A stretch of DNA of 30,432 nucleotides from Auanema rhodensis (Eukaryota > Animalia > Nematoda). The translations under genes were made by a program, and so were the position numbers. The notes beneath the pieces were generated by a model. It was not told where the DNA came from, made no database searches, and saw only the letters and a list, made by a program, of their open reading frames with translations. The stretch is taken from the NCBI GenBank assembly GCA_964057225.1, contig CAXKVF010000068.1, forward strand, positions 1 through 30,432. Reading direction: 5' to 3'. Below, piece by piece: positions 2,677 through 22,800 of the stretch (positions within the stretch are counted from its first letter, which is position 1; every line of letters starts with the position of its first letter).

Positions 2677-3000
2677 CATGCGGAGAGATGAAATCAAATA
2701 GATTGTACTCATCACTATTCAATTATTTGTCCTTATATGAATCATATTTTTCATCATGTTTATCATCGTCATCAGCATTAGTTTCATAAACATCAATATT
2801 TTTTTTTTAATTATTGCCATTGTTTTTATCGTTTTCAATTTCAATGTTATTACTACTATTACTGTTTTCATTATTGCTATAAGTTTTTTTGTTTCGATTA
2901 TTATTATATTTATTATTGAAATTGATTGAAATTTTTTTTATAACTTTTAAAATTTATATCATTTTGACTATCAGGATCTCATAAATCTACAAAAGGTTTA
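2677..3000. repeat. Segmental duplicate of 3497-3810 (3' end and downstream tail of Rep paralogue 1)
   Basis: catgcggagagatgaaatcaaatagattgta...ctcataaatctacaaaaggtttat is present near-identically at both positions. Confidence 0.9.
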
Positions 3001-3071
3001 TACGTACGAATGGTTTATACGCACGATTTTATCTCTTTTATCTATCTATCACATTGCATAAATTTTTTGTC

Positions 3072-3495
3072 TCTCTATTCTTTCCAAATTTTTGCATGTT
3101 CCAGTGTTCTATTCTAACAAAGTTCTTTTTATTTAAGTTTGATAAATACTTATTCTCAGAAATATTTTTTGATCATACAGAGTCGAGAAAATTACTCTTC
3201 AACGAAGATGAAAGAGTTTTTCCAGATTAGGAGTAGGGGAAACACCCCTAAGATTAAAATAGATATGTACTTTTTTTTGAGATGTAAAACATGAAGAAGA
3301 ATTATTAGATCAGGAGTAGGGGAAACACCCCTAAGATTATTCATCTCTTTCCTCTTTCCAAATTTTTTCATGTTCCAGTGTTCTAATCTAACAAAGTTTT
3401 TTTTTTATGTTTGATAAATACTTATTCTCAGAAATATTTTTTGATCATACAGAGTCGAGAACATTACTCTTCAACGAAGATGAAAGAGTTTTTCC
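3072..3495 (+). repeat. ~280-bp repeat unit (about 1.5 copies) containing two TAGGGGAAACACCCCTA palindromes; direct-repeat copy at 14759-15076
   Basis: aaattactcttcaacgaagatgaaagagtttttcc...gataaatacttattctcagaaat...cagagtcgaga is duplicated locally and again at 14.76-15.08 kb. Confidence 0.85.
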
Positions 3496-3787
3496 CATGC
3501 GGAGAGATGAAATCAAATAGATTGTATTCATCACTATTCAATTATTTGTCCTTATATGAATCATATTTTTCATCATGTTTATCATCGTCATCAGCATTAG
3601 TTTCATAAACATCAATATTTTTGTTTTAATTATTGCCATTGTTTTTATCGTTTTCAATTTCAATGTTATTACTACTATTACTGTTTTCATTATTGCTATA
3701 AGTTTTTTCGTTTCGATTATTATTATATTTATTATTGAAATTTTTTTTATAACTTTTAAAATTTATATCATTTTGACTATCAGGATC

Positions 3788-5213
3788 TCATAAATCTACA
3801 AAAGGTTTATCTTCTTCGTAATCACTTTGAAATGTCCGAATTGTTTTGAACCCATGCCCTTCTTTCCATATTGGTTGTTGTTGCAACGCTGTACTTTTTC
3901 CAATCCAATGAATACGTCCCATGAATGCCTTGAGCTGAAAAATATAAAGTTAGTTAAAATTATAGAAGTCTATAATTTCGACACTAGAAAATAAATGTAA
4001 TGCTGAAATAATAAAAATTATTCACCGTTTCTGGATCTCCCGGAAACCATTCTCTTGGATGAAAATTCGAAAGTAAAAAAATTTTAGTTGCATATATGGT
4101 GCAACTGGAAAACTTCACATTTAAGCTGAAAAAATCAATTGGAGTGAGCATTACACATAACACCTACCGACAAACTCCATCATTGCAAAGAAGTAAAAGT
4201 TGTCGTGATGACATATAACCACGTTGTCCAAAATGAACTACTTCTTCTAGTATAATAGAATCTTCATCATTATATTCTGAAACAACGATTATAAACTTAT
4301 TACTTTCAGAACATACAAAAAAACTCACTCTCAAAATATGCAGAATTATCCGCGGCAACTGTATAACAATCATCTCCTAAAAATCAAATCAAATAATAAA
4401 TGTTATTGATCAAAAACTGTCTATACCTAAGAATGAATTGGCAAAATATGATTTTCCTGTACGAGTATCACCGTATAAAACGTAAACACGCACATTTTTG
4501 CGTCTGGCTTTTTTTGGAATCACCCGTTGAAAAGCACTCCTCAGTTCAGCTATATGACGCAAAGCAACATCATATTTGATTAGATCCTGACAGTCTTCGA
4601 CTGTCCAACCATTGTTCTGTATGTTGAAAAGCATTGCATTGACATAACAACGGCTCAAATCTGCAACATGTCTGCCTAAAAGTAAACAAATACGTGAAAT
4701 AAAAAAAAAATCATTAACCTATTATAAGATGTGATTTTTTATCTAGTTTTGAACGTAGTTTATGCAATTCCACGTTAGTGGTTATGCGGTTTAATACGCA
4801 ACTATATGCACCACAATTGCTTCTTGTTTCCAAAACTTCGTAAAAGAAGTCAAAAACATCTTTTTCAATCACAATATTATTGAAAAAAAGAATGAGCTGA
4901 ACAAATAAGGGAAAAAAATATTAAAAAAGAGGTAAGAAGTGCAAACCAGTATTGTTTCGCTCGAACCATCTTCATTGCAGTACTCAATGCATCGTAACTT
5001 TGTTGACAAATTGAATTCGGCTTCTTTACAGAAATTTACGAATTTACTAATCAAATAGGCCGGACCAATTGATAATTGAACCGAACAACACACGAAATTA
5101 GGTTCTACATGTCTTACTTTTTTAATCTGAAAAATTGAACAATGTTATGTTTATTCAAATTTGAAAACCTTGTTCATTTGTTCTGCAAGAGTTTGTCTGT
5201 TTTCGTAGTTCAT
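3788..5213 (-). CDS. Rep-like SF3 helicase paralogue 1 (CRESS-DNA virus Rep type), 8 exons, ~351 aa
   Basis: Exons 5213-5169, 5126-4947, 4896-4719, 4675-4427, 4376-4329, 4276-4168, 4125-4026, 3934-3788, all GT-AG and phase-consistent. Spliced protein shows Walker A VYVLYGDTRTGKS, YFEKY (at the position of WWDGY), Walker B IILEE, B' LLLLCNDGVCRLNVKFSS, motif C IFLLSNFHPREWF and Arg finger KAFMGRI. No recognisable HUH or YxxK motif in the N-terminus. Start codon less certain. Confidence 0.85.
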
Positions 5214-5467
5214 ATTCTCCTCATCTTCATTGATGAGCTGTTGTGTTATCTCATTTTGAAAAAACACATTGAAAAGATAGGGGAAACACCCCTACTGTTT
5301 GTTAGGGGATATACCCCTATAAAGCAATAGTTAGCTGTCCCTACGCAAAATTGGGGAATTGCCGCTATTGAAAAAACAATAGAAGCCCCCAAAGAAAACA
5401 AAACATAATAACAATGAAACTACAAATTATGAAAATTTTTAGAATTATTAGTATAAAAAAAATCTTA

Positions 5468-6162
5468 TTATCTTACCCATGTTATCGCTAGAAGTTTTCT
5501 TTTCCTATTCGAATTTATTGAATCAGAGAACTCACTTGAGTTCTAAAAAAAATTGTTTTTTTTCTTCAAAGTTTAAAACAAACCTCGTCATTTGTTTCGT
5601 GAATTTGTGAACTGGCTAAATAATTGGATGAAACTGAAATACGTCCACGCTCCATAAACGGAAACAGAACCAAACTTTTCTGTGAACATTCAAACAATAC
5701 TGAGATACAAATCAATAGAAAACGTACTTCTAGTTCTAAATTTTCCATATTGATGGGTTGTGTTGTATTGATTTCTTGCGCATCCTCTTCTCTTATTTCC
5801 AAACTAGCCGAAGATTTCTGAGATCCCGTTTCAAAATCAGTATCCGTGAATGGAAACGAGATCAAACAATTCTGAAAACATGCATATCCACAAAATAATA
5901 ATGTGGAACCAACCTCTTCTTCTTCTTCATCGTTATTGTTTCTGATACTTTGAGTAGACAGTGGTTGTGAATCTATTTCTTCAATCTAAATTGATTTAGT
6001 ACATTAACATTAATCCAGCAAGCACTAAAAATAAATCATTGAACTAACTGTTTGATCATTGATGAAATTCAATGAGAAATTATCAGCGTGTTCAATAAAA
6101 CCATGTTCGATTCCTTGTGGAACTCCATTAATTTTCCTGCCATTGTATTCAGATATTTTCAT
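5468..6162 (-). CDS. Hypothetical acidic, low-complexity spliced protein (about 5 exons) with C-terminal RKRK NLS-like motif
   Basis: MKISEYNGRKINGVPQGIEHGF...NDQT / IEEIDSQP...DEEEEE / NCLISFPFTDTDF...LELE / KSLVLFPFMERG...NDE / NSSEF...NRKRKLL, joined by phase-0 GT-AG introns. The 3' end is uncertain (possible extra donor gtaag at ~5476). Confidence 0.55.
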
Positions 6163-6716
6163 GTTTTACAAACGATGAATTGATTTGAAACTGAAAAAAT
6201 GCCATGAATGCTAGAAGAATAGAGGAAACAACTATGAAAGTTTCAAAAACGGAACAAACAAAGTTTTGAATCACGACACAGAACAATGAATCGATTTAAT
6301 TTTTTTAAACAATAGAAGAATCACCATATGACCCGAAGAAACAATGAATAATCTAAGTGTTCACATATTCATGCAAAATAAAAAAACGGCAATCTTGGAA
6401 GGCACATCAAAAAAAAACTTTAATTTATGAGGTAGTCATATTTCATGTCTGTCATATAAACATATATGAACATATATGAACATGTATATGTATTTAAAAA
6501 GGGGCGGCAGTGTTTTTCGGCATGTTGAAAGTAGCCTCAAATTTACGAGGTACTAGTTGTTACATATTATGTATATTACATTATAGCCATTTCATGAACA
6601 TGTGTAACAAGAATCATTATAACATGTTTCAATTTTGAGAAAAAAAAACCAAAATATCTCATTAGTTATATTAGTTGTTCTATTTATTTGTTTTTATCTT
6701 TGAAAAATTTACAGAA

Positions 6717-7953
6717 ATGACTCGAGTTATACGTCAAGATTGTTTTCTCAATTCATGCACAACATCATCTTCCATTGCTGCAAAAGAACTGTTTAATGTT
6801 ATAAGTCATAATGATCTTTTGCACACATACATCGATGTAAGACCATACGTTATCATAATATTACATTTTCTTTCACTTCAGATTTTTATGATGAAAAATG
6901 TTGCTGGTTTTGCCAAAAATAAACATGTGAGCGAGATGCAACTACACTTTTTCAAATATTTTTTACAATCACACAATCCAACCGTGTCGCTTGCTGCAAT
7001 CAAAATTGTGGTATTATTTTGTTTATAATTTGAACCTAAATAGAAAAATAACATTTTATAATAACTTTTTTTTAAGATCATCAATGTCATTATACGTGAC
7101 TCAAAATTCAGCATTATGATAGAGAAAGATGTTCGAAAAGAACCATTTTTTGTCCAGTTTCTTTATCTCGCTCAATCATCATTTATGGAAATGAGATTAA
7201 ACAAGACATCGGTTTAGTTTTCATTATATTTAATAACATTGTGAAAAACAAAATACACTAAATTCATGAATAATTTCAAAAAAAAGCATTACAAACTTTT
7301 AGAATAAATTTTTAACGGCTCTTCATCGATATGTGATGAAATGGAAGAATAAATCTATTGCTGAAGTGGAAAATAAAGTCAGTATTTTTCATTGAAAAAA
7401 TGAACTTTAGAAACTTTTAGGACGACACATTTAGAACAAACGTTGAAACACCAATTTATTACGATAATAGAACTCAGGTTTTTTGAGATACTTCTTCTTA
7501 TCGAATTGTTAAATTTCAGAACATCAACAGAGAAGAAAATACATGTTGTGCTTGCAATGGCACACTTCCTGATTTACTTGCTGAAACAATCATATCAATG
7601 CGCATGGACTTATGTGAGAATAACGAGAAAGACTACGAATGGAAAATACTGAACAAGGAGCAATGTTCCAAACAAATTCTCACGTAAGTTTATGAATTAT
7701 CTTTAATTTACATAAACAACTTATATTTCTTTTCAGTGAAGGCATACAAATGATAGCCTTTATTGCTACACGGCGTAAACCACCCACATGGATTCGTATA
7801 AAATTTATCAGATTTAATCGTCTTGGTAACTTAGAATTTTTCATCCGTCGAAAAAACTCATATTCACCAACTAAAAATTTATCTGTTCTAAAACATTGTA
7901 AAAGTTGTTTTCACAAAATATGTCTTGTTTTACAAAAAAAAAAATATAAATAG
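6717..7953 (+). CDS. Hypothetical 7-exon protein, ~298 aa; N-terminal CID/VHS-like helical domain and C-terminal Cys-rich region
   Basis: Exons 6717-6836, 6882-7010, 7077-7211, 7303-7377, 7421-7477, 7520-7683, 7737-7953 are phase-consistent. LQSHNPTVSLAAIKIVIINVIIRDSK...LHRYVMKWKNK resembles the CID/VHS pattern (by eye only). CCAC...CKSC follows. Confidence 0.7.
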
Positions 7954-8104
7954 AATAAATTATACCCATCCACACGTTGATTTGATAGGGGTTTTTCCCG
8001 GATTGTAGAATTGAAGAATAAACAACCGCTCACCATTAAAATTGATTGCGGATCTTAAATGTTATATCGAATAAAAATTTTTAAGGCTGAAATATGTTAA
8101 CGAA

Positions 8105-8440
8105 ATAGGGTTTTCTAATGTTTACTAGGGGTTTTCCCCGTACTCAGACAATGCTTGATCGAACTACGTGAAAAAATGCTTGCAATATAACATTTGAGCG
8201 CAATTGCAAAAGTGGACGGAGCCTGCGCCCTATTCCATGTAATGTTGCGAAAGTGGGCAGAGCCTGTGCTTCATTCCATATAGTGCTATAAAATTGGACA
8301 GAGCCCCCCGCACCTCTCTACCATAATACAAAATAGAAAATTCAAAAGAACACTAGTGAAAAATAGGGGTTGTACCCCTAGATAAAAAAAATAAGGGTTG
8401 TACCCCTAGGTAAAAAAATAGGGGTTGTACCCCTAGGTAA
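8105..8440 (+). repeat. Diverged copy of the shared intergenic module (end of the 150-bp unit plus GC-rich block), followed by three TAGGGGTTGTACCCCTAG-type units
   Basis: taatgtttactagggg...agacaatg...gagcgcaattgcaaaagtgg...gagcctgcgccctattccatgtaatgttgc...gcacctct matches 11540-11755. Three palindromic units at 8364, 8392 (one mismatch) and 8419. Confidence 0.85.
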
Positions 8441-9024
8441 AAAATCTGGTAATAATAAGAAGCTCAAAGTACAGAGTTGATTGCACAGTAGTACACAAAA
8501 AGTAGAGTGTTTTATTATGAAAAGTCAGAAATCTTTAAACAGCATTTTGTCAGAACATTTAAAAAAATCATTTTGCAAGTTGTAAAACGCAATAACTTCT
8601 TTGAAGTTTTATCCGATTTTGACACTTTATTCCCATCATAAAAGTTTCCAGAAGTTCTCCGACTCGTAAAACTTGTAAACTATTTTCATCAGTTTTTATA
8701 TTGTTTTGCTATTAGGACAAATCTCAAACGATTTCATTCAAACAACAAAAGGACTTGCCGTCAGCAAATTAATAATGAACTTTTACCGATTGGTTTAACC
8801 CATTGACAGGTTCAAAACTTTTTTGGTATTGACTTTTTATTCCCATAATAAACTTGCAGGGAAGACGTTTCACCTTATATGAAACTTTTGTTATTCATTT
8901 CTTTCAATTTGTTGTTTTGTTTACAGGTATTCACGATAATTAATGTTGTTTCATGTCTGACATTTCGATTATATTTTGGTTGTCTTCTTCATTTATTTTA
9001 TTGTTTTGTTTCCAGGTGTTCATA

Positions 9025-10216
9025 ATGATTAGTTCTAATATGATTCGTTCAAATGTAACTCCTAACAAAACAGGTACCACTATAGTTATTGTTCTTGTTT
9101 TCTGATGTTTTTAGTTTTAGAATTAGATTCTTTTGAAAATGAAATTGTCCCTACTCCAGTTGCTCCTAGTAAAGATATCTCTCTACCGATACAACATGTA
9201 GATGATGAAGGTTTTTATGGAATATAAACTTTATTTTGATGTTAATATGTAATTTCAGGTTCAGACTCTTTTGAGAAAGAGAACGTTGTTATCTCAGCTG
9301 AGCGTACAAGAAGTTTTCAGTCACCTGTCAATTTTGAAAACGAAGGTTTTTGCAGAAATATTAATTCAATGTTTATGTGACATTTAGAACTTGAAATTAT
9401 TCAAGAAATGGAATTCAATGGACAGCGATGCTCCACCCCTCTTCATGAAAAGTTGTTGCCAAGTATTCATCAAGCTATAGTAAAAGGTAAGAAACATTTT
9501 ATCATAAACATTTCTGTATTAATACATTCAGAAGAAACAAATAATGAGGATTTATTTACTGATTCACTGGAAGAAATTTCTCATTCCGAAGGTAACCTTG
9601 TTCTAAAAATGTTCATGAATATATATTTCCAGTTTTTTTCGAAATTGATGAACAAGAAAATCTATCGAATGATATTAATTTGACAAATATGAAAAAAAGA
9701 AGAAGAAGCTCAGGAGACGTTATTTGCGAATGTAGTTGTGAAATCAAACGCTTGACAAATAAAGCTATTCAAAAAATAGCTAGTAAGTTATAGTTGAAAA
9801 TTTGAAAATTCACATTTTTATATTTGATTAATTATAGGAAACTTACAACCTATTATTGATAGGCAATGCATACCAGAACTTTGCCTGATAGGAACCAAAA
9901 TCTTGGTTTATCACCGGAACACACGTTCCTGGCGTCTAGGAGTCATACAAGACATATCTGACATTTATAGCACAATAACATATTCTCTTATCACAGTAAA
10001 ATTATAAATTTTCTAATTTTTGATTTCATAATCATTCAAATTTAGACTAGTGATGTGGAAGATACGCTTTTAGCCAAAAAATACAAATTTTTATTAACCA
10101 AGAAGCGATTGGTGGGCAAACAGAAAGACTGGCCTAAACACACATACAGACTGATTTGTGATGATATTTCTAAACCTCATTTGTATTTAATTCAAACACT
10201 GTATGACTTAGATTAA
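9025..10216 (+). CDS. Hypothetical 8-exon protein, ~287 aa; acidic N-half, KKRRRS NLS, C-terminal Tudor/Agenet-like domain
   Basis: Exons 9025-9073, 9121-9210, 9259-9345, 9388-9486, 9532-9591, 9633-9782, 9838-9995, 10046-10216 are phase-consistent. LIGTKILVYHRNTRSWRLGVIQDISDIYSTITYSLITTSDVEDTLL fits the Tudor pattern iG.rv.vy......W..G.I........i.Y......E. Extra 5' exons in 8.5-9.0 kb are possible. Confidence 0.7.
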
Positions 10217-10545
10217 TTTTTCTTTCAATTTTTTGTTTATCCTTTTTGTATTAAGCTGTATCTTATACCACATCGGTTTTTTTCTCAATTTCTTGTTTTT
10301 TTTTCTTAATTTCTTGTTCATACTTTCACTATTAAACTGTATCATATAACTCAAAACTTATCTTCCAATTTCTTGTTCATACTTTTTTTAATAAACTATA
10401 TCACAAATTTCTCATAGGGGTTTCTCCCCTATTTACATTGTTGCTGAAAACTTTCAACGTGCATTGCACACCTTTTGTATAAAGTTAACGTTTTTTTATT
10501 TTTTTCGCTTATTTGATTTTAATATGATGACTCGAACTAACCTTA

Positions 10546-11238
10546 ACGGGGCTGGTTAATGACGACATTTTTCAAAACCAATCATTTCAATTTTGACACA
10601 TGGAATATTTTTTACTTTCCGATATTTGATTTATCTTTAATAGATTATGAGTTTTATGAACGGGGCTTGTTAATGACAATCTCTCATGAAGTGATATGCT
10701 TCACTGAAATTTACACTTTTTCCGCGTATGACATTTTTCAAAACCAATTATTTCAATTTTGACACATGGAATATTTTTTACTTTCCGATATTTGATTTAT
10801 CTTTAATAGATCATGAGTTTTATGAACGGGGCTTGTTAATGACAATCTCTCATGAAGTGATATGCTTCACTGAAATTTACACTTTTTCCGCGTGTGACAT
10901 TTTTCAAAACCAATTATTTCAATTTTGACACATGGAATATTTTTTACTTTCCGATATTTGATTTATCTTTAATAGATCATGAGTTTTCTGAACGGGGCTT
11001 GTTAATGACAATCTTTCATGAAGTGATATGCTTCACTGAAATTTACACTTTTTCCGCGTATGACATTTTTGAAAACCAATTATTTCAATTTTGACACATG
11101 GAATATTTTTTACTTTCCGATATTTGATTTATCTTTAATAGATCATGAGTTTTCTGAACGGGGCTTGTTAATGACAATCTTTCATGAAGTGATATGCTTC
11201 ACTGAAATTTACACTTTTTCCGCGTATGACATTTTTTT
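10546..11238 (+). repeat. 166-bp tandem repeat, about 4 copies
   Basis: tgacatttttcaaaaccaattatttcaattttgacacatgg...ggggcttgttaatgac recurs every 166 bp; the repeated ORFs start at 10728, 10894 and 11060. Confidence 0.95.
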
Positions 11239-11274
11239 TGAATCAGTTAGTTGTTAACTTGATTGGTTCTAGTA

Positions 11275-12165
11275 GGCAGAGCCCCCGCACCTCTATACCA
11301 TAAAACATTAAAATACATACTCAATAAAAAATACATATTATTCCTAAAAAAAAAATTTTTAATAATCAAAAATAATAACGAAAAAAACTTGTTAATGTTT
11401 ACTAGGGGTTTTTCTCCTAATTAGACAATGGTCGATCGAAATACTTGAAAAAATGCTTTCATTATAACATTTGAATAAAAAATACATATTATTCCTGAAA
11501 AAAGTTTTTTAATAATCAAAAATAATAATGAAAAAAATTTGTTAATGTTTACTAGGGGTTTTTCCCCTAATTAGGCAATGGTCGATCGTAATACTTGAAA
11601 AAATGCTTTCATTATAACATTTGGGCGCAATTGCAAAAGTGGGCGGAGCCTGCGCCATATTCCATGTAATGTTGCAAAAGTGGGCGGAGCCTGCGCTTTA
11701 TTTCATGTATTGCTATAAAATTGGGCAGAGCCCCCGCACCTCTATACCATAATACATTAAAATTTATTGCGGATCGTGCAAAATACATACTCAATAAAAA
11801 ATACATATTATTCCCAAAAAAAATTTTTTAATAATCAAAAATAATAATGAAAAAAATTTGTTAATGTTTACTAGGGTTTTTTCCCCTAATTAGACAATGG
11901 TCGATCGAAATACTTGAAAAAATGCTTTCATTATAACAGTTGAATAAAAAATACATATTATTCCTAAAAAAAATTTTTTAATAATCAAAAATGATAATGA
12001 AAAATATTTGTTAATGTTTACTAGGGGTTTTTCCCCTAATTAGACAATGGTCGATCGAAATACTTGAAAAAATGCTTTCATTATAACATTTGAGCGCAAT
12101 TGCAAAAGTGGGCGGAGCCTGCGCCCTATTCCATGTAATGTTGCAAAAGTGGGCGGAGCCTGCTC
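11275..12165 (+). repeat. Shared intergenic module: 150-bp tandem units plus GC-rich blocks with GGGCGG boxes
   Basis: Four 150-bp units (taaaaaatacatattattcc...taggggtttttccccta...ggtcgatcg...ataacatttg) and two blocks of gcgcaattgcaaaagtgggcggagcc. Confidence 0.9.
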
Positions 12166-12259
12166 GCTGTTCGCCATAATGATACCCAATTTTTCTCATT
12201 TTTATGAACCCAATTTTTCTCATTTTTATGAATCCAATTTTTTATTCAAGTGCTCTTCA

Positions 12260-12778
12260 ATGGATGTAGGTTGGTGAAATTAATATTATATCAGTTGTAT
12301 TTTTGTTTTGTTTTTTTTTTCAGAAGAAGTCGTAGAATTTCTAATTCAAAGTACAGAAAGTACTCCACTCCAGAAAAAACGGAAGAAAACAGTTCCCAAA
12401 AAATCACAAAAATCGAAGGTATGTTACTGTGTTTATTTGAAAATTTAAAATCTATTTCCAGGTTGAGAATGAAATCTCTCATTATCAAAAATCTTTAAAA
12501 AATATGATTCCCAAACTAAGTTTTCAAAGAGTATGTCGGGAAATTATTCAGAAAATGGGAGATTTTCGGATGACAGGAGGAAGTCTGGCAGCGCTTCAAG
12601 TCAGAAATTTTTTTTATCGACTAAAATTCATAATAACAATTTTCAGGAAGCATCCGAAGCTTACTTGGTGAATTTATTTGAGCTTTCCTCGATAGCTGCG
12701 CTTCACGCAGGTCGAAAAACTGTTATGCCAAAGGACTTTTTGTTAGTGAAGTTACTGAATTGCGGTAAACTTTTTTAA
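12260..12778 (+). CDS. Divergent histone H3 variant, 4 exons, 124 aa
   Basis: Exons 12260-12269, 12324-12418, 12462-12599, 12647-12778 give [124 protein letters not shown]. This is colinear with the H3 fold (EIRRYQKS, FQRLVREI, ALQEA.EAYLV.LFE, HAKRVTIMPKD). Confidence 0.92.
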
Positions 12779-12952
12779 AATTCTCTGTTTTTCTGAGTTG
12801 TTGTTGTTCATTTTCACTGTTCCTGTTTGTTTACTTAAAAGACTTTTTTTCTCTTTATATTTTGTTTAATGTGTGGATATTCCATTCTTACTTGATTTTT
12901 ATTGATTTGGCAATTTAATTTAACTACCTCATTTTTTTCATGTGTCAGTGAT

Positions 12953-13944
12953 ATGAATTTTGCATATGTTGCTGAAAATTTAGGCAAACGCAGACTTAAT
13001 CCTTCAATAGGTATATTTTCGATTTTTCCAGAGTTCTCAAAATAATTTTTTATTAGGACTAGATATGTGGAGCGAGAACGGAACTGCCGCTGAAGGGCTC
13101 ACGGAAGAAGAAAGAGATTTCATCGATGACTCATATGGTTAGTGGATTTATTCAATGTAAAACGTGAATCTAATATTCCTATCTTTCAGATTTAGAAAAA
13201 GAAAAAGTAGAAATGTTTTCTTTATTAAGCGGTGAGAAACACGAACAAGAAAAAAGAGCTGTAAGCAGAAGAATTGAATCGAGGAAAGATGTATTCATCT
13301 TAGACAAACCACGCAGAATTCAAGTTAGTTTTCAATATATTCTTTTCTGAAAAATTTTCTTTCTAGCTGAAATCGAAAATAAATTGTTCTAACTCAACAA
13401 ATTTAATGCAATTTCTATTGATAGTTTTGAAAATTCCCGAAGAACGTAATTTTTTGCTCGAGCTTAAAGAAAACAGTTTGGAGAAAAAAAAGAAAAACTC
13501 GCTAATTAATGGTTTCTCTAGGTGCGCTAAAGAAATAACGGTACGTTTCATTATTTTTCCAATTTCCATGAGACATTACAGTTTTGTGCCATCGACGGCT
13601 TTGTTTATGCTAAAAAATCTGGTGAATTTCTAACAAATAGCCGTTTGCAGCAAGCGAATACACTCCATTCATTTTGCTGCTCTGAGAAAGGAATTTTTGC
13701 TGCTGAGTTAGTCATTTTTGAGTTCAAACTTAATACTAACTGCCGAACACTCAGATTTGGAAAGATTTCTTTAATAGAAGATGTACAAGAGAAAGAAAAA
13801 ACGTTCTTCATTTTCTCAATTTTTGTTTTTTCAATCTCTTGCTCTCATTGCAAAACGTATTTGAACTCGTTATGTAATACGGAAAAGGTAATGAGTTGTA
13901 TACGTACCCACGTGATGGATTTTATCTTGAGAAACATAGAATAA
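12953..13944 (+). CDS. Hypothetical 5-exon protein, ~269 aa, with KRRL and acidic DFIDDS motifs and a C-terminal CxxC
   Basis: Exons 12953-13010, 13057-13137, 13190-13323, 13367-13540, 13582-13944 are phase-consistent with no internal stop. Confidence 0.7.
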
Positions 13945-13952
13945 ATTTTTTT

Positions 13953-14753
13953 AAAAAATACGTATTATTCCTAAAAAAAATTTTCAATAATTAAATATAA
14001 TAATGAAAAATATTTGTTAATGTTTACTAGGGGTTTTTCCCCTAATTAGACAATGGTCGATCGAAATACTTGAAAAAATGCTTTCATTATAACATTTGAA
14101 TAAAAAATACATATTATTCCTAAAAAAAATTTTTTAATAATCAAAAATGATAATGAAAAATATTTGTTAATGTTTACTAGGGGTTTTTCCCCTAATTAGA
14201 CAATGGTCGATCAAAATACTTGAAAAAATGCTTTCATTATAACATTTGAATAAAAAATACATATTATTCCTAAAAAAAATTTTTTAATAATCAAAAATGA
14301 TAATGAAAAATATTTGTTAATGTTTACTAGGGGTTTTTCCCCTAATTAGACAATGGTCGATCGAAATACTTGAAAAAATGCTTTCATTATAACATTTGAA
14401 TGAAAAATACATATTATTCCTAAAAAAAAATTTTTAATAATCAAAAATAATAATGAAAAATATTTGTTAATGTTTACTAGGGGTTTTTCCCCTAATTAGA
14501 CAATGGTCGATCGAAATACTTGAAAAAATGCTTTCATTATAACATTTGAATAAAAAATACATATTATTCCTAAAAAAAAATTTTTAATAATCAAAAATAA
14601 TAATGAAAAATATTTGTTAATGTTTACTAGGGGTTTTTCCCCTAATTAGGCAATGGTCGATCTTGAAAAAATGCTTTCATTATAACATTTGAGCGCAATT
14701 GCAAAAGTGGGCGGAGCCCGCGCCCTATTCCATGTAATGTTGCAAAAGTGGGC
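13953..14753 (+). repeat. 150-bp tandem repeat x5 plus GC-rich block; same family and orientation as 11275-12165
   Basis: Exact 150-bp period, ending in gagcgcaattgcaaaagtgggcggagcc...gcaaaagtgggc. Confidence 0.95.
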
Positions 14754-14758
14754 ATAAT

Positions 14759-15076
14759 AAAATTACTCTTCAACGAAGGTGAAAGAGTTTTTCCACATTA
14801 GGCTTAGGGTGAAACAGTAGGGGAAACACCCCTAAGATTAAAATAGAAATGTACTTTTTATTGAAGTGTAAAACATGATGAAGAATTATTAGATTAGGAG
14901 TGAGGGAAACACCCCTAAGATTAATAATCTCTTTTCTCTTTCCAAATTTTTTTATGTTCTAGTGTTCTATTCTAACAAAGTTCTTTTTTTTTATATTTGA
15001 TAAATACTTATTCTCAGAAATAATTTTTGATAATACAGAGTCGAGAAAATTACTCTTCAGCGAAGATGAAAGAGAT
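14759..15076 (+). repeat. Direct-repeat copy of 3189-3492
   Basis: Colinear match including both ggaaacacccctaagatt motifs; contains an extra ttaggcttaggg. Confidence 0.88.
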
Positions 15077-15087
15077 TTCATTGATGA

Positions 15088-16085
15088 TTTCCGATTGATT
15101 TCCTATGTGTCATTTTTGAGATGAACTATTTTAAAAATTGTGAAAATCACCAAAAAACCCAAGATTCAAAAGATCATATGTTCTTTCAAACTTGAGCCAA
15201 CAACAAGCCCCTCTCGAAAGTATGCTGAATGATACATTTTCATTCATATATGAACTCTCGATTAATTTCCTATGTGTCATTTTTGAGATGAACTATTTTA
15301 AAAATTGTGAAAATCACCAAAAAACCCAAGATTCAAAAGATCATATGTTTTTCCAAACTTGAGCCAACAACAAGCCCTTTTTGAAAGTATGCTGAATGAT
15401 ACATTTTCATTCAAATATGAACTACCGATTGATTTCCTATGTGTCATTTTTGAGATGAACTATTTTAAAAATTGTGAAAATCACCAAAAAACCCAAGATT
15501 CAAAAGATCATATGTTCTTTCAAACTTGAGCCAACAACAAGCCCCTTTTGAAAGTATTCTGAATGATACATTTTCATTCATATATGAACTCCCGATTGAT
15601 TTCCTATGTGTCATTTTTGAGATGAACTATTTTAAAAATTGTGAAAATCACCAAAAAACCCACGATTCAAAAGATCATATGTTCTTTCAAACTTGAGCCA
15701 ACAACAAGCCCTTTTCGAAAGTAAGCTGAATGATACATTTTTATTCATATATGAACTACCGATTGATTTCTTATGTGTCATTTTTGAGATGAACTATTTT
15801 AAAAATTGTGAAAATCACCAAAAAACCCAAGATTCAAAAGATCATATGTTCTTTCAAACTTGAGCCATCCAAAAATCAAAAAAAAACCAACATTTAAAAG
15901 GTCATATGTTTTTCCAAAATTGATCCAGTAACAAGCGCCTTGCGATAATATGTTGAATGACCCATTTTCATTCATATATCAACTCACAATTCATTTTCTA
16001 TGTGTCTATTTTGAGATAAATTGTTTTAAAAAATCTTGAAATCACCAAAAAACCCAACATTTAAAAGGTCATATGTTTTTCCAAA
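15088..16085 (+). repeat. 167-bp tandem repeat, about 4.7 clean copies plus a degenerate tail
   Basis: cgatt(g/a)attt(c)ctatgtgtcatttttgagatgaac recurs at 15092, 15259, 15426, 15593 and 15760. Confidence 0.95.
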
Positions 16086-16189
16086 TGTTTCATGTTTCTT
16101 ATTTTAATATTGTATAAATTAAGTTCCTGAGAAAATAAAAATACGACGATGAGGTTTCAACAATATTTATTGAGTTCAAAGTAAACAAA

Positions 16190-16906
16190 TCAATGTGCAT
16201 ATCTTTCTAAAACAAATTTTGCTTTCCTGCGATTAATATGATTCATAAGCGAACGAAAAGTTGCCCCGTGTTCTAGCAATAAACTGGAAGCAATAGATAT
16301 GGGTATAATACTTGGGTTTATTAGACACTTTATGTGTAGAAATTCATAAACATGAATGAGTTCATGAACCATAACCGAAAGTAATTCCATTTTTTTGTCT
16401 TTTCTGAATGAAAAAGCAGTTTTTTTTGCACTGTCGCGCTTTTTTTCAAGAAATGAAGAACAAAAAAATGTTATCGAAATATTATTGCAATTTCTCGTAG
16501 TATAAGCATGTTTGTCTTTCATTGTGACATTACTATTACATTTTACTTGAATGGATATGCCGTAGGAGAAGATTTTGGAATCAAAAAAGTGAAAATCTAG
16601 ATATTTTAACAATTTTCTGAAACATCTTTCATCAGATGTGCAGGCGGGGAATGAGTTATTGTTCTCGATATCTGCTACAATATCAAAAAAACTCGTTGAT
16701 GTTTGTGCTGGCAATGGCATTTCAATTTGAGAAAAATCAAATGTTTCTGAGATAGTGTTTTTTTCCAACAATGCTTCATATTGTTCGCGAGTAATGAAGT
16801 TTTCGGATTTGCGTATTCCTTTTTTTTCACAGTGTACATACACTACATTAAAAGCAAACGAATTTCCATGAAGTTTTTCTTTGGACAAGAGAACCACGTA
16901 AGACAT
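16190..16906 (-). CDS. SprT/Spartan-like zinc metalloprotease domain protein (at least 238 aa)
   Basis: Longest ORF in the window. LLSVMVHELIH followed by HGATFRSLMNHIN matches the HExxH...HGxxF signature of the SprT family (SPRTN/GCNA/Wss1-like). A short upstream exon near 16954-16972 is possible. Confidence 0.8.
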   Translation of the reverse strand: MSYVVLLSKEKLHGNSFAFNVVYVHCEKKGIRKSENFITREQYEALLEKNTISETFDFSQIEMPLPAQTSTSFFDIVADIENNNSFPACTSDERCFRKLLKYLDFHFFDSKIFSYGISIQVKCNSNVTMKDKHAYTTRNCNNISITFFCSSFLEKKRDSAKKTAFSFRKDKKMELLSVMVHELIHVYEFLHIKCLINPSIIPISIASSLLLEHGATFRSLMNHINRRKAKFVLERYAH

Positions 16907-17399
16907 ACTGAATGAAATTATTATTCAAAATTTCCGAAAAGCAAATAATTTACCTTAAGGTTCGATTTTATTCTAAAATATTTCACTAAATCTTGAGTGG
17001 ACACTAAAAAAAATTATTAATTTCGAAAAAATTTCAAGAAGAATGAAAAATAAGATAAGAAGAATGAAAAAAATACAATGAACAATAAATCAAGAGATGA
17101 AAACAGTGAAAACACAGATGAGAATGACTGGAAAATGTGTGATTGTGATTGATTTAGATTAAACCATATTCCACCAAAACAAAAACATATATACGATACA
17201 GAATAAATTTCATAAATAAAAAAAATAAAAAGGAGAAAATAATGATGAGTAAATATTAGAGAAGAAAAAAAAATCGATCAAATTAAAACAAAAATTAATC
17301 AACGAACATTAGAAAAAGTTATGCTTCACAAAATATAAATAAAAAATCTATCAAAATTTGAGTTTGAGTTAGTAACAAGCCCCTCATTATCTCTATATA

Positions 17400-18196
17400 A
17401 TGGAAAACGAAATACAAAAAAAGAGCTGGAAGTTGACGGTAAGTAATAAGTTTTTCGAGCAATATTATTTTTTTTAGAACTGCTTGGAATTGCGTTATGA
17501 TGTAGCTATGTGGCATCAATCACAATTAAAACACTTAATATTCCTTGTTGACGATGCTGAATGTGATAGAAAGGATGTACGAGTATATATACTCTACGGA
17601 GATTCTGGAGCAGGCAAATCTTATTTTGCTAAGAAGTATCTCGGTATGAATTTTTTTTATTAATTTTCAAATTTGAAAAAACTATTTCAGCAAAAGTTGC
17701 CGGATCTGTGTATACAACATCTGCTGATTGTACTAGTTATTTTGAAAGTGAGTTTCAAATTTGTTCCGATAAAAAAAAATTTATAGAATATAACAAGCAA
17801 AAAAACAAGCAGAATTATAATTGATGAAGTTGAACAGTTCGGACAACGTGGGTACATGACAGGAAAACAGCTCTTAATGATGTGTAATGATGGTACCTGC
17901 AGGTAAGTGTTGAACACAAAAATAGTATTACTAAACCCATTTTTTCATATTGAACGTTAAATTTTCAAGTTGTGTCATAAAAGCCCATCATATCTTTCTT
18001 ATTTCGAACATAGAACCTTCGCAATGGTTTGGGAATGATCATATAACAGTGAGTTCCCGATAAGGTTAAAAATTACATTTGGTTTCAGTTGACAGCGTTC
18101 AAGAGACGAATACATTGGATTGGCAAAGCAACCGAATTGAAATCTCAACCGAAATGGAGGAGAGGAAAAGCATTTGAAACAGTTTTGAAAAATTAG
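17400..18196 (+). pseudogene. Rep-like SF3 helicase paralogue 2, helicase part only, disrupted
   Basis: VRVYILYGDSGAGKS, IIIDEVEQFGQRGY, LLMMCNDGTCRLNVKFSSC, IFLISNIEPSQWF and AFKRRIHWIGK, with four intron positions shared with paralogue 1. Lesions: frameshift explained by a 7-bp duplication aacaagc (17804-17810), acceptor cag>cat (17946-17948), and no N-terminal domain. Confidence 0.85.
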
Positions 18197-18488
18197 ATTC
18201 CCCATGTCCATATTAGTCTAAAAACAAATTTTTATTGATATTGGTTCATGGTAACCATGACTTTGAAATTTACGTGAACTTTAATTTATGCTAATTAAAT
18301 GTACACGTGATATGCACTTGGTATGTAACTCGCTTCACGTGAAAGATAAAGAGATGCGGTTTTCAAATTTAGATTCCCCATGTCCATATTAGTCTAAAAA
18401 CAAATTTTTATTGATATTGGTTCATGGTAACCATGACTTTGAAATTTACGTGAACTTTAATTTATGCTAATTAAATGTACACGTGATG
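18190..18488 (-). repeat. About 1.7 diverged, inverted copies of the 176-bp satellite family
   Basis: Period is exactly 176 (ttagattcccc at 18193 and 18369). Aligns with the reverse complement of the satellite through catattagtcta.aaaca, tggtaacca.gacttt.aa.ttacgtgaa, tgtaactcg and aaagata. Confidence 0.85.
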
Positions 18489-18515
18489 CGCTGCTCCCTA
18501 TCGTCGGGAGCAGCG
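18489..18515. other. Perfect GC-rich hairpin, 10-bp stem and 7-nt loop
   Basis: cgctgctccc-tatcgtc-gggagcagcg. Confidence 0.9.
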
Positions 18516-18621
18516 AGTGCGTGAAGGAGCTTAGTTTTTCAGGAACATCGTTTTTTCCCCATATCGTCTTTATCGTTACAAAATTTTTCCAATTTCCATG
18601 AGACATTGCAGTTTTGTGCCA

Positions 18622-19058
18622 GTTTAAAGTTATCTATTTCATCTATGATAATTGCTTCTTGGTTTTTGTATTCTGTAATTGAAACATTAATAATTGAAAT
18701 ATGTCATACTTATTCACTTTCGAAATGTGCCGAATTATCAGCTACTATGTGATACACACTATTACCTGGAAAATGAAACGTTAAGTGAAACAAAGTGTTA
18801 ACCAAGAAAAAACCTAGAAACTTTGAAGCAAAATGTGTTTTTCCTGTTCCTACATAACCATATAGTACATAAACGCGGACATTGGTTCTGTAAGCTTCCT
18901 TTGGTTCTTGGAAAACACACAATTGTTTCAATTGTGTCTGATGTCGCATGGTAGCATCAAGTTTCACTCCCATGCAGTCACAAAAACTCCAGCCATCATT
19001 TTCGATTTTTTTATCATTATGTCTAAATATCCGAGACTGAGTTCATTATCCTTGGTTC
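18622..19058 (-). pseudogene. Rep-like SF3 helicase paralogue 3, internal fragment
   Basis: ELSLGYLDIMIKK/IENDGW...NVRVYVLYGYVGTGKTHFASKFLG|NSVYHIVADNSAHFE|KYKNQEAIIIDE, with the same intron positions as paralogue 1. One-base frameshift in the T-run at 19006-19012. Cut 5' by the 37-bp array and 3' just after Walker B. Confidence 0.85.
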
Positions 19059-19116
19059 CTTAACGTTTCCAATAGAAAAATTAACGAAAAAAAATTTTTT
19101 AACTAGCATTTTTAGA

Positions 19117-19745
19117 AGCATGAGATCTATGACTAAGCATATGACTAAGTCTAAGCATGAGATCTATGACTAAGCATATGACTAAGTCTAAGCATGAGAT
19201 CTATGACTAAGCATATGACTAAGTCTAAGCATGAGATCTATGACTAAGCATATGACTAAGTCTAAGCATGAGATCTATGACTAAGCATATGACTAAGTCT
19301 AAGCATGAGATCTATGACTAAGCATATGACTAAGTCTAAGCATGAGATCTATGACTAAGCATATGACTAAGTCTAAGCATGAGATCTATGACTAAGCATA
19401 TGACTAAGTCTAAGCATGAGATCTATGACTAAGCATATGACTAAGTCTAAGCATGAGATCTATGACTAAGCATATGACTAAGTCTAAGCATGAGATCTAT
19501 GACTAAGCATATGACTAAGTCTAAGCATGAGATCTATGACTAAGCATATGACTAAGTCTAAGCATGAGATCTATGACTAAGCATATGACTAAGTCTAAGC
19601 ATGAGATCTATGACTAAGCATATGACTAAGTCTAAGCATGAGATCTATGACTAAGCATATGACTAAGTCTAAGCATGAGATCTATGACTAAGCATATGAC
19701 TAAGTCTAAGCATGAGATCTATGACTAAGCATATGACTAAGTCTA
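19117..19745 (-). repeat. 37-bp telomere-variant tandem repeat, exactly 17 identical copies
   Basis: Unit agcatgagatctatgactaagcatatgactaagtcta; 629 bp = 17 x 37. The minus strand reads TTAGAC TTAGTC ATATGC TTAGTC ATAGATC TCATGC. Confidence 0.97.
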
Positions 19746-19746
19746 A

Positions 19747-19894
19747 GCCTAAGCCTAAGCCTAAGCCTAAGCCTAAGCCTAAGCCTAAGCCTAAGCCTAA
19801 GCCTAAGCCTAAGCCTAAGCCTAAGCCTAAGCCTAAGCCTAAGCCTAAGCCTAAGCCTAAGCCTAAGCCTAAGCCTAAGCCTAAGCCTAAGCCT
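19747..19894 (-). repeat. Perfect telomeric tract (TTAGGC)24 on the minus strand, interstitial
   Basis: 24 x gcctaa followed by gcct. Confidence 0.98.
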
Positions 19895-22800
19895 GGTTAC
19901 CAAGCACCAAACACAATAAGATAGTGTTTCTAGACTAATATGACCATGAGGAATTCATTAAAATTTACAGAATGCTTCTATCTTTAACAGAAACCGAGTT
20001 ACAAATTATGAGCACTTAGCTCGGATACTTAGCTTGTATAGCTGACACTTCACGTAAAATTGAAAGTCCTGGTTACCAAGCACCAAACACAATAAGATAG
20101 TGTTTCTAGACTAATATGACCATGAGGAATTCATTAAAATTTACAGAATGCTTCTATCTTTAACAGAAACCGAGTTACAAATTATGAGCACTTAGCTCGG
20201 ACACTTAGCTGGTATAGCTGACACTTCACGTAAAATTGAAAGTCCTGGTTACCAAGCACCAAACACAATAAGATAGTGTTTCTAGACTAATATGACCATG
20301 AGGAATTCATTAAAATTTACAGAATGCTTCTATCTTTAACAGAAACCGAGTTACAAATCATGAGCACTTAGCTCGGACACTTAGCTTGTATAGCTGACAC
20401 TTCACGTAAAATTGAAAGTCCTGGTTACCAAGCACCAAACACAATAAGACAGTGTTTCTAGACTAATATGACCATGAGGAATTCATTAAAATTTACAGAA
20501 TGCTTCTATCTTTAACAGAAACCGAGTTACAAATTATGAGCACTTAGCTCGGACACTTAGCTTGTATAGCTGACACTTCACGTAAAATTGAAAGTCCTGG
20601 TTACCAAGCACCAAACACAATAAGATAGTGTTTCTAGACTAATATGACCATGAGGAATTCATTAAAATTTACAGAATGCTTCTATCTTTAACAGAAACCG
20701 AGTTACAAATTATGAGCACTTAGCTCGGACACTTAGCTGGTATAGCTGACACTTCACGTAAAATTGAAAGTCCTGGTTACCAAGCACCAAACACAATAAG
20801 ATAGTGTTTCTAGACTAATATGACCATGAGGAATTCATTAAAATTTACAGAATGCTTCTATCTTTAACAGAAACCGAGTTACAAATTATGAGCACTTAGC
20901 TCGGACACTTAGCTGGTATAGCTGACACTTCACGTAAAATTGAAAGTCCTGGTTACCAAGCACCAAACACAATAAGATAGTGTTTCTAGACTAATATGAC
21001 CATGAGGAATTCATTAAAATTTACAGAATGCTTCTATCTTTAACAGAAACCGAGTTACAAATCATGAGCACTTAGCTCGGACACTTAGCTTGTATAGCTG
21101 ACACTTCACGTAAAATTGAAAGTCCTGGTTACCAAGCACCAAACACAATAAGACAGTGTTTCTAGACTAATATGACCATGAGGAATTCATTAAAATTTAC
21201 AGAATGCTTCTATCTTTAACAGAAACCGAGTTACAAATTATGAGCACTTAGCTCGGACACTTAGCTTGTATAGCTGACACTTCACGTAAAATTGAAAGTC
21301 CTGGTTACCAAGCACCAAACACAATAAGATAGTGTTTCTAGACTAATATGACCATGAGGAATTCATTAAAATTTACAGAATGCTTCTATCTTTAACAGAA
21401 ACCGAGTTACAAATTATGAGCACTTAGCTCGGACACTTAGCTGGTATAGCTGACACTTCACGTAAAATTGAAAGTCCTGGTTACCAAGCACCAAACACAA
21501 TAAGATAGTGTTTCTAGACTAATATGACCATGAGGAATTCATTAAAATTTACAGAATGCTTCTATCTTTAACAGAAACCGAGTTACAAATCATGAGCACT
21601 TAGCTCGGACACTTAGCTTGTATAGCTGACACTTCACGTAAAATTGAAAGTCCTGGTTACCAAGCACCAAACACAATAAGATAGTGTTTCTAGACTAATA
21701 TGACCATGAGGAATTCATTAAAATTTACAGAATGCTTCTATCTTTAACAGAAACCGAGTTACAAATTATGAGCACTTAGCTCGGACACTTAGCTTGTATA
21801 GCTGACACTTCACGTAAAATTGAAAGTCCTGGTTACCAAGCACCAAACACAATAAGATAGTGTTTCTAGACTAATATGACCATGAGGAATTCATTAAAAT
21901 TTACAGAATGCTTCTATCTTTAACAGAAACCGAGTTACAAATCATGAGCACTTAGCTCGGACACTTAGCTGGTATAGCTGACACTTCACGTAAAATTGAA
22001 AGTCCTGGTTACCAAGCACCAAACACAATAAGATAGTGTTTCTAGACTAATATGACCATGAGGAATTCATTAAAATTTACAGAATGCTTCTATCTTTAAC
22101 AGAAACCGAGTTACAAATCATGAGCACTTAGCTCGGACACTTAGCTTGTATAGCTGACACTTCACGTAAAATTGAAAGTCCTGGTTACCAAGCACCAAAC
22201 ACAATAAGATAGTGTTTCTAGACTAATATGACCATGAGGAATTCATTAAAATTTACAGAATGCTTCTATCTTTAACAGAAACCGAGTTACAAATTATGAG
22301 CACTTAGCTCGGACACTTAGCTTGTATAGCTGACACTTCACGTAAAATTGAAAGTCCTGGTTACCAAGCACCAAACACAATAAGATAGTGTTTCTAGACT
22401 AATATGACCATGAGGAATTCATTAAAATTTACAGAATGCTTCTATCTTTAACAGAAACCGAGTTACAAATTATGAGCACTTAGCTCGGACACTTAGCTTG
22501 TATAGCTGACACTTCACGTAAAATTGAAAGTCCTGGTTACCAAGCACCAAACACAATAAGATAGTGTTTCTAGACTAATATGACCATGAGGAATTCATTA
22601 AAATTTACAGAATGCTTCTATCTTTAACAGAAACCGAGTTACAAATTATGAGCACTTAGCTCGGACACTTAGCTGGTATAGCTGACACTTCACGTAAAAT
22701 TGAAAGTCCTGGTTACCAAGCACCAAACACAATAAGATAGTGTTTCTAGACTAATATGACCATGAGGAATTCATTAAAATTTACAGAATGCTTCTATCTT

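Follow-up and report, generated by a model that had tools for sequence, protein, structure and literature searches.

The stretch of DNA analysed here, called the window, covers positions 1 to 30,432 of contig CAXKVF010000068.1 (30,432 nucleotides; assembly GCA_964057225.1) from the nematode Auanema rhodensis (A. rhodense), and it holds a compact island of genes embedded in tandem repeats. The island, at 3497-19116, is AT-rich with a G+C content of 30% and contains nine genes or relics, seven as intact models and two as decayed paralogues of an ATPase gene, with common repeat modules between them. The ATPase gene hel1 (3788-5213, minus strand) is intact, with eight exons and 351 amino acids (aa), and is followed by gene B (5477-6162, minus strand), an acidic orphan of at least five exons and at least 164 aa with an uncertain 3' end. 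The plus strand then carries gene C (6717-7953), an orphan of seven exons and 298 aa; gene D (8953-10216), with eight exons, 311 aa and acidic repeats; a divergent histone H3-like gene (12260-12778) of four exons and 124 aa; and gene F (12953-13944), an orphan of five exons and 269 aa whose C-terminus is rich in cysteine and histidine. A single-exon SprT-like open reading frame (ORF) of 238 aa lies on the minus strand at 16190-16906. Towards the right edge stand two relics of the ATPase gene, namely hel2 (17400-18195, plus strand), a broken paralogue that corresponds to hel1 residues ~162-335, lacks the N-terminal domain and contains one frameshift, and hel3 (18572-19042, minus strand), a fragment corresponding to residues ~153-266 that is cut at both ends and is free of stops and frameshifts in the part that was kept. 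The initial annotation had described nine compact genes or pseudogenes separated by shared repeat modules, and both parts of this description hold, the former as seven intact models plus hel2 and hel3, the latter as the modules termed M1 and M2 and the arrays of 166/167-bp units.

The gene models were built from stop-free segments joined at canonical GT-AG introns, with canonical sites and the introns common to paralogues as anchors. All model introns are of the GT-AG type, measure 39-91 nt and end in T-rich acceptors of the TTTCAG/TTTTAG type. The score of the spliced ORFs exceeded all 60 dinucleotide shuffles in six out of six multi-exon regions, with a wide margin for gene C (318 versus a shuffle maximum of 202) and gene D (321 versus 199) and a narrow one for gene B (196 versus 180) and the H3-like gene (155 versus 140); a 244-codon stop-free stretch exceeded all 200 shuffles. 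Judged by these sequence properties, the predicted genes of the window are real, spliced, host-type nematode genes. By eye, T-rich AG acceptors were also noticed a few bases 5' of several start codons (6706-6716, 16907-16915 and at gene B), and upstream acceptors of this kind are what is expected of trans-spliced nematode mRNAs.

By inspection, hel1 presents the motif layout of SF3 helicases (Walker A, Walker B, motif C and arginine finger), with GDTRTGKS at residue 203 (K209), IILEE at 241 (E244-245), IFLLSN at 285 (N290) and R310, and the same blocks align in hel2. Walker A is followed after 35 residues by the acidic pair, after a further 45 by the hydrophobic-SN motif and after another 20 by the conserved arginine. 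Such a compact layout has the look of an SF3 helicase, being more compact than that of AAA+ proteins, and serves as a lead and not as a test. Remote searches with hel1 were run with single exons, the 82-aa Walker A exon representing the ATPase domain. In Pfam this exon gave weak matches to SF3 families (PPV_E1_C, E = 0.0069, 16 bits versus a cut-off of 26.5; RNA_helicase, E = 0.066, 14.1 versus 21.5 bits; DUF5906, E = 0.25), and no SF3 or Rep family was reached at significance in Pfam, PHROGs or NCBIfam, which returned generic P-loop families. The PDB sequence search with the hel1 exon and with an alignment of the three copies retrieved no SF3 helicase, the profile leading to Vps4-type AAA+ proteins, and phmmer with the 82-aa exon found 0 matches among 1.84 billion representative proteins, a weak negative for so short a query. 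The tblastn searches against plasmids and phages yielded only noise-level P-loop matches of the Sak4/AAA_24 type. The N-terminal exons, which encode a domain of 200 aa, matched no family, and an H-x-H or H-x-Q (HUH) motif is present nowhere in hel1. No nonanucleotide origin stem-loop was found, the sole recurrent hairpin having a variable 5-nt loop, and a capsid family was matched by none of the ORFs or exons.

The genes that had been announced as spliced CRESS-type Rep helicases are thus spliced P-loop ATPases with SF3-like motifs, as far as the predicted proteins tell, but the name CRESS-type Rep fails on two defining features. To call hel1 an SF3-like ATPase is plausible but unproven. The three copies share 33-56% protein identity and no alignable DNA. 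Their intron positions, read from the sequence and the models, coincide where the copies overlap, hel1 having seven introns, and the ATPase copies would therefore be duplicates of an already intron-bearing gene that spread as genomic DNA and not as a virus. In gapless codon blocks, the proportion of differing silent sites (pS) is 0.65-0.91, which is saturated, and that of replacement sites (pN) is 0.26-0.37. We conclude that the copies appear to have a long history of divergence under purifying selection and that two of them were probably disabled only recently. Such long constrained divergence weighs against both a recent viral integration and pure drift.

The H3 variant was recognized by Pfam Histone on two exon-bearing pieces (E = 1.8e-8 and 1e-6), both above the 26.4-bit cut-off, and H3 chains from the PDB align co-linearly to H3 residues 49-93 (E = 1e-4) and 94-129 (E = 2e-8), which bears out the H3 variant of the initial annotation. 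The histone fold is complete, with H3 residues 49-129 covered. The first ~35 residues of the model align with no H3 tail, the PDB alignments starting at H3 residue 49, and a variant without the canonical tail would therefore be unable to carry the usual tail marks. Relative to H3, centromeric variants (cenH3/CENP-A) are characterized by a longer loop 1 and by loss of the conserved glutamine in alpha1. The H3-like protein has a loop 1 that is one residue shorter than that of H3 and retains the FQR motif, and a cenH3 identity was rejected on these grounds. The predicted protein is an H3-fold variant that is neither canonical H3 nor cenH3-like. The homologue search with the H3 piece, restricted by its word index and length window, found nothing.

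The searches of Pfam, PHROGs and NCBIfam covered 30 exon or ORF pieces, among which Histone was the sole significant family. The SprT protease proposed by the initial annotation is weakly supported: the ORF contains HELIH at residues 181-185 and later histidines at 191, 213 and 223 as candidates for the third zinc ligand, but the Pfam SprT-like match remains weak and below the cut-off (E = 0.031, 14.6 versus 25.6 bits, profile positions 56-101 of 108). The ORF had no sequence match in the PDB, no homologue in the search restricted by word index and length window and no match in the exact look-up in public assemblies; its single-sequence AlphaFold2 model reached a pLDDT of 37. Gene D had been labelled Tudor-like; its C-terminal part may form a beta-barrel, and the candidate region spans a splice junction. 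Searched exon by exon, the two exons over this region match nothing at E up to 5. For gene C, labelled CID-like before, six exons were searched singly and gave no match relevant to a CID/VHS-type domain. The first 21 codons of gene D (8953-9015) are strongly hydrophobic, and they may serve as a signal sequence or span a membrane, unless translation in fact begins at an ATG further downstream.

On the right, the island borders on telomeric sequence and a satellite. An array of 17 copies of a 37-bp unit made of telomere-like hexamers (19116-19745, minus strand) has the same orientation as the adjacent interstitial array of ~25 perfect TTAGGC units (19741-19892, minus strand, GCCTAA on the plus strand), for which 28 matches were counted versus 0.03 expected. 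This telomere array abuts directly a 176-bp satellite (19892-30432) with ~60 copies and a median identity of 98%, which runs past the end of the window. Between hel2 and hel3 there is an AT-1-like satellite unit on the minus strand, in two copies 176 nt apart (18184-18487). On the left, a degenerate 21/42-bp repeat with GGCTTA (telomere G-strand) units on the plus strand (37-413) forms the telomere-type flank. It is followed by a 47/61-bp satellite with AT-rich spacers (712-2583) and, on the minus strand, by a 96% identical duplicate (2677-3001) of 3496-3810, which comprises the hel1 3' end and downstream sequence and belongs to a local 0.8-kb duplication taking in this gene end. The duplicate carries the copied last codons of hel1, so that an isolated 3' end of this gene is found left of the island. 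The initial annotation had seen telomere-type repeats on both sides with their G-strands pointing inward. The orientation is as described, the G-strand being on the plus strand at the left flank and on the minus strand at the right one, but the left repeat does no more than resemble telomeric sequence and is 3 kb away from 3497-19116, beyond the 47/61-bp satellite.

Several modules recur between the genes. Module M2 occurs at 3070-3495, as two sub-copies with TAGGGG-N5-CCCCTA hairpins, and again at 14759-15078, with 88-91% identity to 3188-3492; the copies are direct repeats 11.58 kb apart with six genes between them. Module M1 combines 150-bp and 41-bp units, a combination found at three locations in the window. 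The first location (8070-8444) has a partial M1, spanning 8070-8330, and a 28-bp hairpin repeat in three copies. The second (11323-12242), directly upstream of the H3-like gene, has arrays in which 150-bp units and a 24-bp repeat accompany 41-bp units that carry a GGC-NNN-GCC core, and the third (13952-14754) has five 150-bp units and 41-bp units. A 166-bp tandem repeat is present in four copies at 10564-11236, and a 167-bp tandem repeat in 4.7 copies, with a diverged tail, at 15091-16085. Inverted repeats of at least 60 nt were not found in the window. This patchwork of repeats is that expected of unequal recombination in repeat-rich DNA and it does not draw the outline of a bounded element. 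In gene F, a 48-nt stretch across the final intron/exon junction (13544-13591) recurs at 18574-18621 with 92% identity and in the same orientation, at the place where the hel3 homology stops.

The satellites relate the window to the DNA that Auanema discards during development. AT-1 (A-elim) is a tandem repeat of the autosome termini of A. rhodense that was found by fluorescence in situ hybridization (FISH) to be lost from somatic nuclei (bioRxiv 10.64898/2026.08.27.747507). Its 28-nt FISH probe matches positions 18299-18326 at 27 of 28 nucleotides, with 0 matches expected by chance, and the AT-1-like unit to which this site belongs has an 82-nt stretch in common with the 176-bp satellite (80% identity, inverted). 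The X-chromosome probes XR-1, XT-1 and XT-2 had no match in the window. About 61% of the Auanema germline genome is lost by programmed DNA elimination, in A. rhodense from all somatic cells at the ~12-cell stage; the eliminated tandem repeats have units of 167-504 nt, the AT repeats are confined to the autosome ends, and read depth is about 29x for eliminated blocks versus about 236x for retained DNA (bioRxiv 10.64898/2026.08.27.747507). The same study counted 360 eliminated genes, half of them derived from transposable elements (TEs) and most of them silent (95 of the 360 with any expression), located a divergent Auanema-specific cluster of H3 variants wholly in eliminated DNA and argued that the eliminated regions are under weak surveillance (bioRxiv 10.64898/2026.08.27.747507). 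The window is probably germline-restricted satellite DNA that is lost from the soma, a status assigned because its satellite family is matched by one AT-1 probe. A germline-restricted element had been one of the alternatives offered in the initial annotation, and it gains support from the probe match and the reported eliminated cluster of H3 variants.

With moderate confidence, we explain the locus as an island of genes, built by segmental duplication, in Auanema satellite DNA that is restricted to the germline and eliminated from the soma. According to this explanation, ordinary intron-bearing nematode genes would sit within blocks of tandem repeats that are kept in the germline, and the island would have grown and been reshuffled by segmental duplication and by unequal recombination between the 150-bp, 41-bp and M2 modules, with neither transposition nor viral replication as the driver. 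Since the DNA is subsequently thrown away, the genes would act only in the germline and in the earliest embryonic stages, and hel1 and the H3 variant would be maintained by selection. The telomere array is most simply read as the trace of an old break within the satellite, healed by telomerase and later made internal, and not as the terminus of a linear element. It meets the first 176-bp monomer on CC, that is GG on the G-strand (19885-19900), and GG is the priming dinucleotide reported at sites of de novo telomere addition in related nematodes (PMC13370393; PMC13060919). Several points weigh against this explanation. The assignment to the eliminated compartment rests on one 28-nt probe match and on satellite kinship, the main 176-bp satellite having no probe match itself, and the exon- and ORF-level searches found no relatives of any window gene besides H3. 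The dN/dS (nonsynonymous to synonymous substitution) comparison of the ATPase copies comes from short gapless blocks in which dS is saturated. Moreover, most eliminated genes are silent and half are TE-derived according to the preprint, so the island could be inert, and a healed break accounts for the right telomere array and not for the oppositely oriented telomere-like repeat on the left.

Two other explanations concern the origin of the island. The ATPase family may descend from an ancient capture of an SF3 helicase from a small DNA or RNA virus, a plasmid or a virus-like transposon, which then lost any endonuclease part, gained introns and now evolves as a host gene family; we regard this as possible though doubtful, and it would be compatible with a germline-restricted island. 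Rep-like genes of circular ssDNA viruses have reportedly entered eukaryotic genomes, the order and spacing of the hel1 motifs fit SF3 helicases, and SF3 families are among the weak Pfam matches (PPV_E1_C, RNA_helicase, DUF5906). However, not one of these matches attains its cut-off and generic P-loop families are interspersed among them, the PDB profile points to Vps4-type AAA+ proteins and to no SF3 helicase, the Walker A exon finds nothing in 1.84 billion proteins by phmmer, and the HUH motif is missing from hel1. In the reading of the initial annotation, the nine genes would make up a single selfish unit with a functionally coherent cargo, be it a mobile cassette or an ssDNA-virus system that was domesticated, which would replicate, package itself in chromatin of its own and live at telomere/satellite junctions. 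The coherence of the cargo is a conjecture, and the selfish unit is highly improbable in our view. Dense packing of genes with no recognizable orthologues, the TAGGGG-N5-CCCCTA palindrome repeated 19 times between them, the M2 direct repeats that bracket six genes at a distance of 11.58 kb and the telomere-type repeats at both sides would all suit such a unit. Yet no transposase, integrase, polymerase, capsid, reverse transcriptase or Rep endonuclease was recognized in any ORF or exon, no inverted repeats of at least 60 nt and no terminal repeats were seen, and the 5-nt hairpin loop has no conserved sequence, unlike rolling-circle origins. Paralogues with common introns were copied as genomic DNA, the inward G-strands are the opposite of those of a linear telomere-capped element, and a single copy of the gene set is visible in the window, with the SprT-like ORF, hel2 and hel3 outside the M2 bracket. 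The selfish cassette was thus not borne out, in the absence of mobility and capsid genes, terminal repeats and a second set in the window.

The function of the genes and the integrity of the assembly have also to be weighed. The island may be inert, consisting of gene duplicates and orphan ORFs that drift under weak selection with none of them functional, which we hold to be unlikely. That only 95 of the 360 eliminated genes are expressed at all and that surveillance is argued to be weak (bioRxiv 10.64898/2026.08.27.747507) would agree with inertness, as would the two broken copies among three ATPase genes and the empty homologue searches. Against it stand seven ORFs of 124-351 codons kept open in DNA of 30% G+C, ATPase silent sites that are saturated when replacement sites differ at only ~0.3, and the conserved residues of the H3 fold. 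Another doubt is whether the sequence in which the cassette meets the telomere array and the satellite was created by the assembly and corresponds to no real molecule. Perfect telomere units enclosed by two arrays so repetitive that they are hard to assemble, and the unusual orientation of the G-strands, invite this suspicion, but the 152-bp array has a single orientation and is flanked on both sides, whereas two fused natural ends would be head-to-head, and the 37-bp array grades into the telomere array with identical orientation. Provided that the window belongs to the published assembly, the reads with telomere repeats at their start or end had been filtered out beforehand, and internal arrays would come from spanning reads. 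An artefactual join is therefore quite improbable. The genes could also be a selected, germline-only toolkit acting on eliminated chromatin, composed of a tail-less H3, an SF3-like ATPase (an ancient viral capture), an SprT-like protease and a possible methyl-lysine reader, a speculation that we consider very unlikely.

The closest known system is the eliminated DNA of A. rhodense itself (bioRxiv 10.64898/2026.08.27.747507), with which the window shares the satellite family of the AT-1 probe, repeat units in the range of 167-504 nt, a divergent H3 gene and few, lineage-specific genes within arrays of the megabase type. The window H3 gene is likened to the reported eliminated H3 cluster by description and not by sequence. 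The window differs in that the text of the preprint makes no mention of a P-loop ATPase family, SprT-like gene, intergenic modules or interstitial telomere array. The eliminated chromosome ends of Oscheius tipulae and basal Caenorhabditis (PMC13370393; 10.1101/2022.08.19.504554) are similarly rich in satellites and in multi-copy, mostly orphan genes, their telomere healing is primed on GG/GGC, and copies of the break motif are repeated within their eliminated DNA, whereas these species eliminate 0.6-2.3% of the genome. The Auanema break motif is said to be similar to that of O. tipulae, and of the break-and-heal motif of the latter the window shows only the core, GGC-NNN-GCC, in the 41-bp unit.

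Other systems show partial likenesses. Endogenous Rep-like genes resemble the ATPase family in that a small SF3-like P-loop ATPase sits in the chromosome of a eukaryote and has decayed copies close to it, but Rep has an N-terminal HUH endonuclease, which hel1 lacks together with any significant Rep similarity, and hel1 has seven introns at positions common to its overlapping paralogues. Interstitial telomere arrays at the boundaries of subtelomeric duplication blocks or at healed breaks also consist of a short perfect array between repeat blocks with degenerate telomere-derived repeats alongside, and their junction likewise falls on a telomerase-priming dinucleotide, whereas a simple stack of subtelomeric blocks does not predict a telomere-like repeat of opposite orientation beyond the island, as present in the window. 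Ciliates reportedly have germline-limited protein-coding genes, such as the germline-limited piggyBac transposase gene of Tetrahymena. Like those of the window, these genes lie in DNA bound for elimination and can be expressed only before its loss, but kingdom and mechanism are different.

Genes that are kept open and one family under constraint in eliminated DNA would indicate that part of the germline-restricted gene complement is put to use, beyond being tolerated. Proteins encoded only in discarded DNA deserve attention in the search for the elimination machinery, and the H3 variant readily suggests itself as a component of special chromatin on the satellites that are eliminated. If the toolkit were real, it might serve in packaging or marking giant satellite blocks, in the elimination machinery or in the unusual inheritance of Auanema chromosomes. 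For virus discovery, the locus is a caution that a compact SF3-like P-loop ATPase beside repeats is insufficient to call a Rep.

Some smaller sequence features accompany the repeats. The Rfam and tRNA scans gave nothing beyond spurious microRNA matches on the telomere array, where the sub-threshold Rfam matches MIR7994 and MIR1888 (19744-19893) were rejected as simple-repeat artefacts. The GGC-NNN-GCC core of the 41-bp unit occurs eight times, at 8260, 11279, 11646, 11687, 11728, 12115, 12156 and 14714; the palindromicity of its flanks does not exceed the background level, and 12 palindromic pairs out of 14 are attained by none of the 29-mers. The palindrome TAGGGG-N5-CCCCTA has 19 sites between 3235 and 14833 (e.g., 5279-5318, 8365-8434 and 14029-14643) versus 0.05 expected. 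Its sites are only intergenic and fall in at least four distinct sequence contexts, in which the stem is kept and the 5-nt loop varies. As DNA it folds into a hairpin of 6-7 bp with -5 to -6 kcal/mol, and its arms are like inverted telomere-like hexamers. We considered it as a histone-mRNA 3' stem-loop and rejected this, as both stem and loop differ and none follows the H3 gene. Beside one of the hairpins, within M2, lies a telomere-like dimer, TTAGGCTTAGGG, at 14798-14809.

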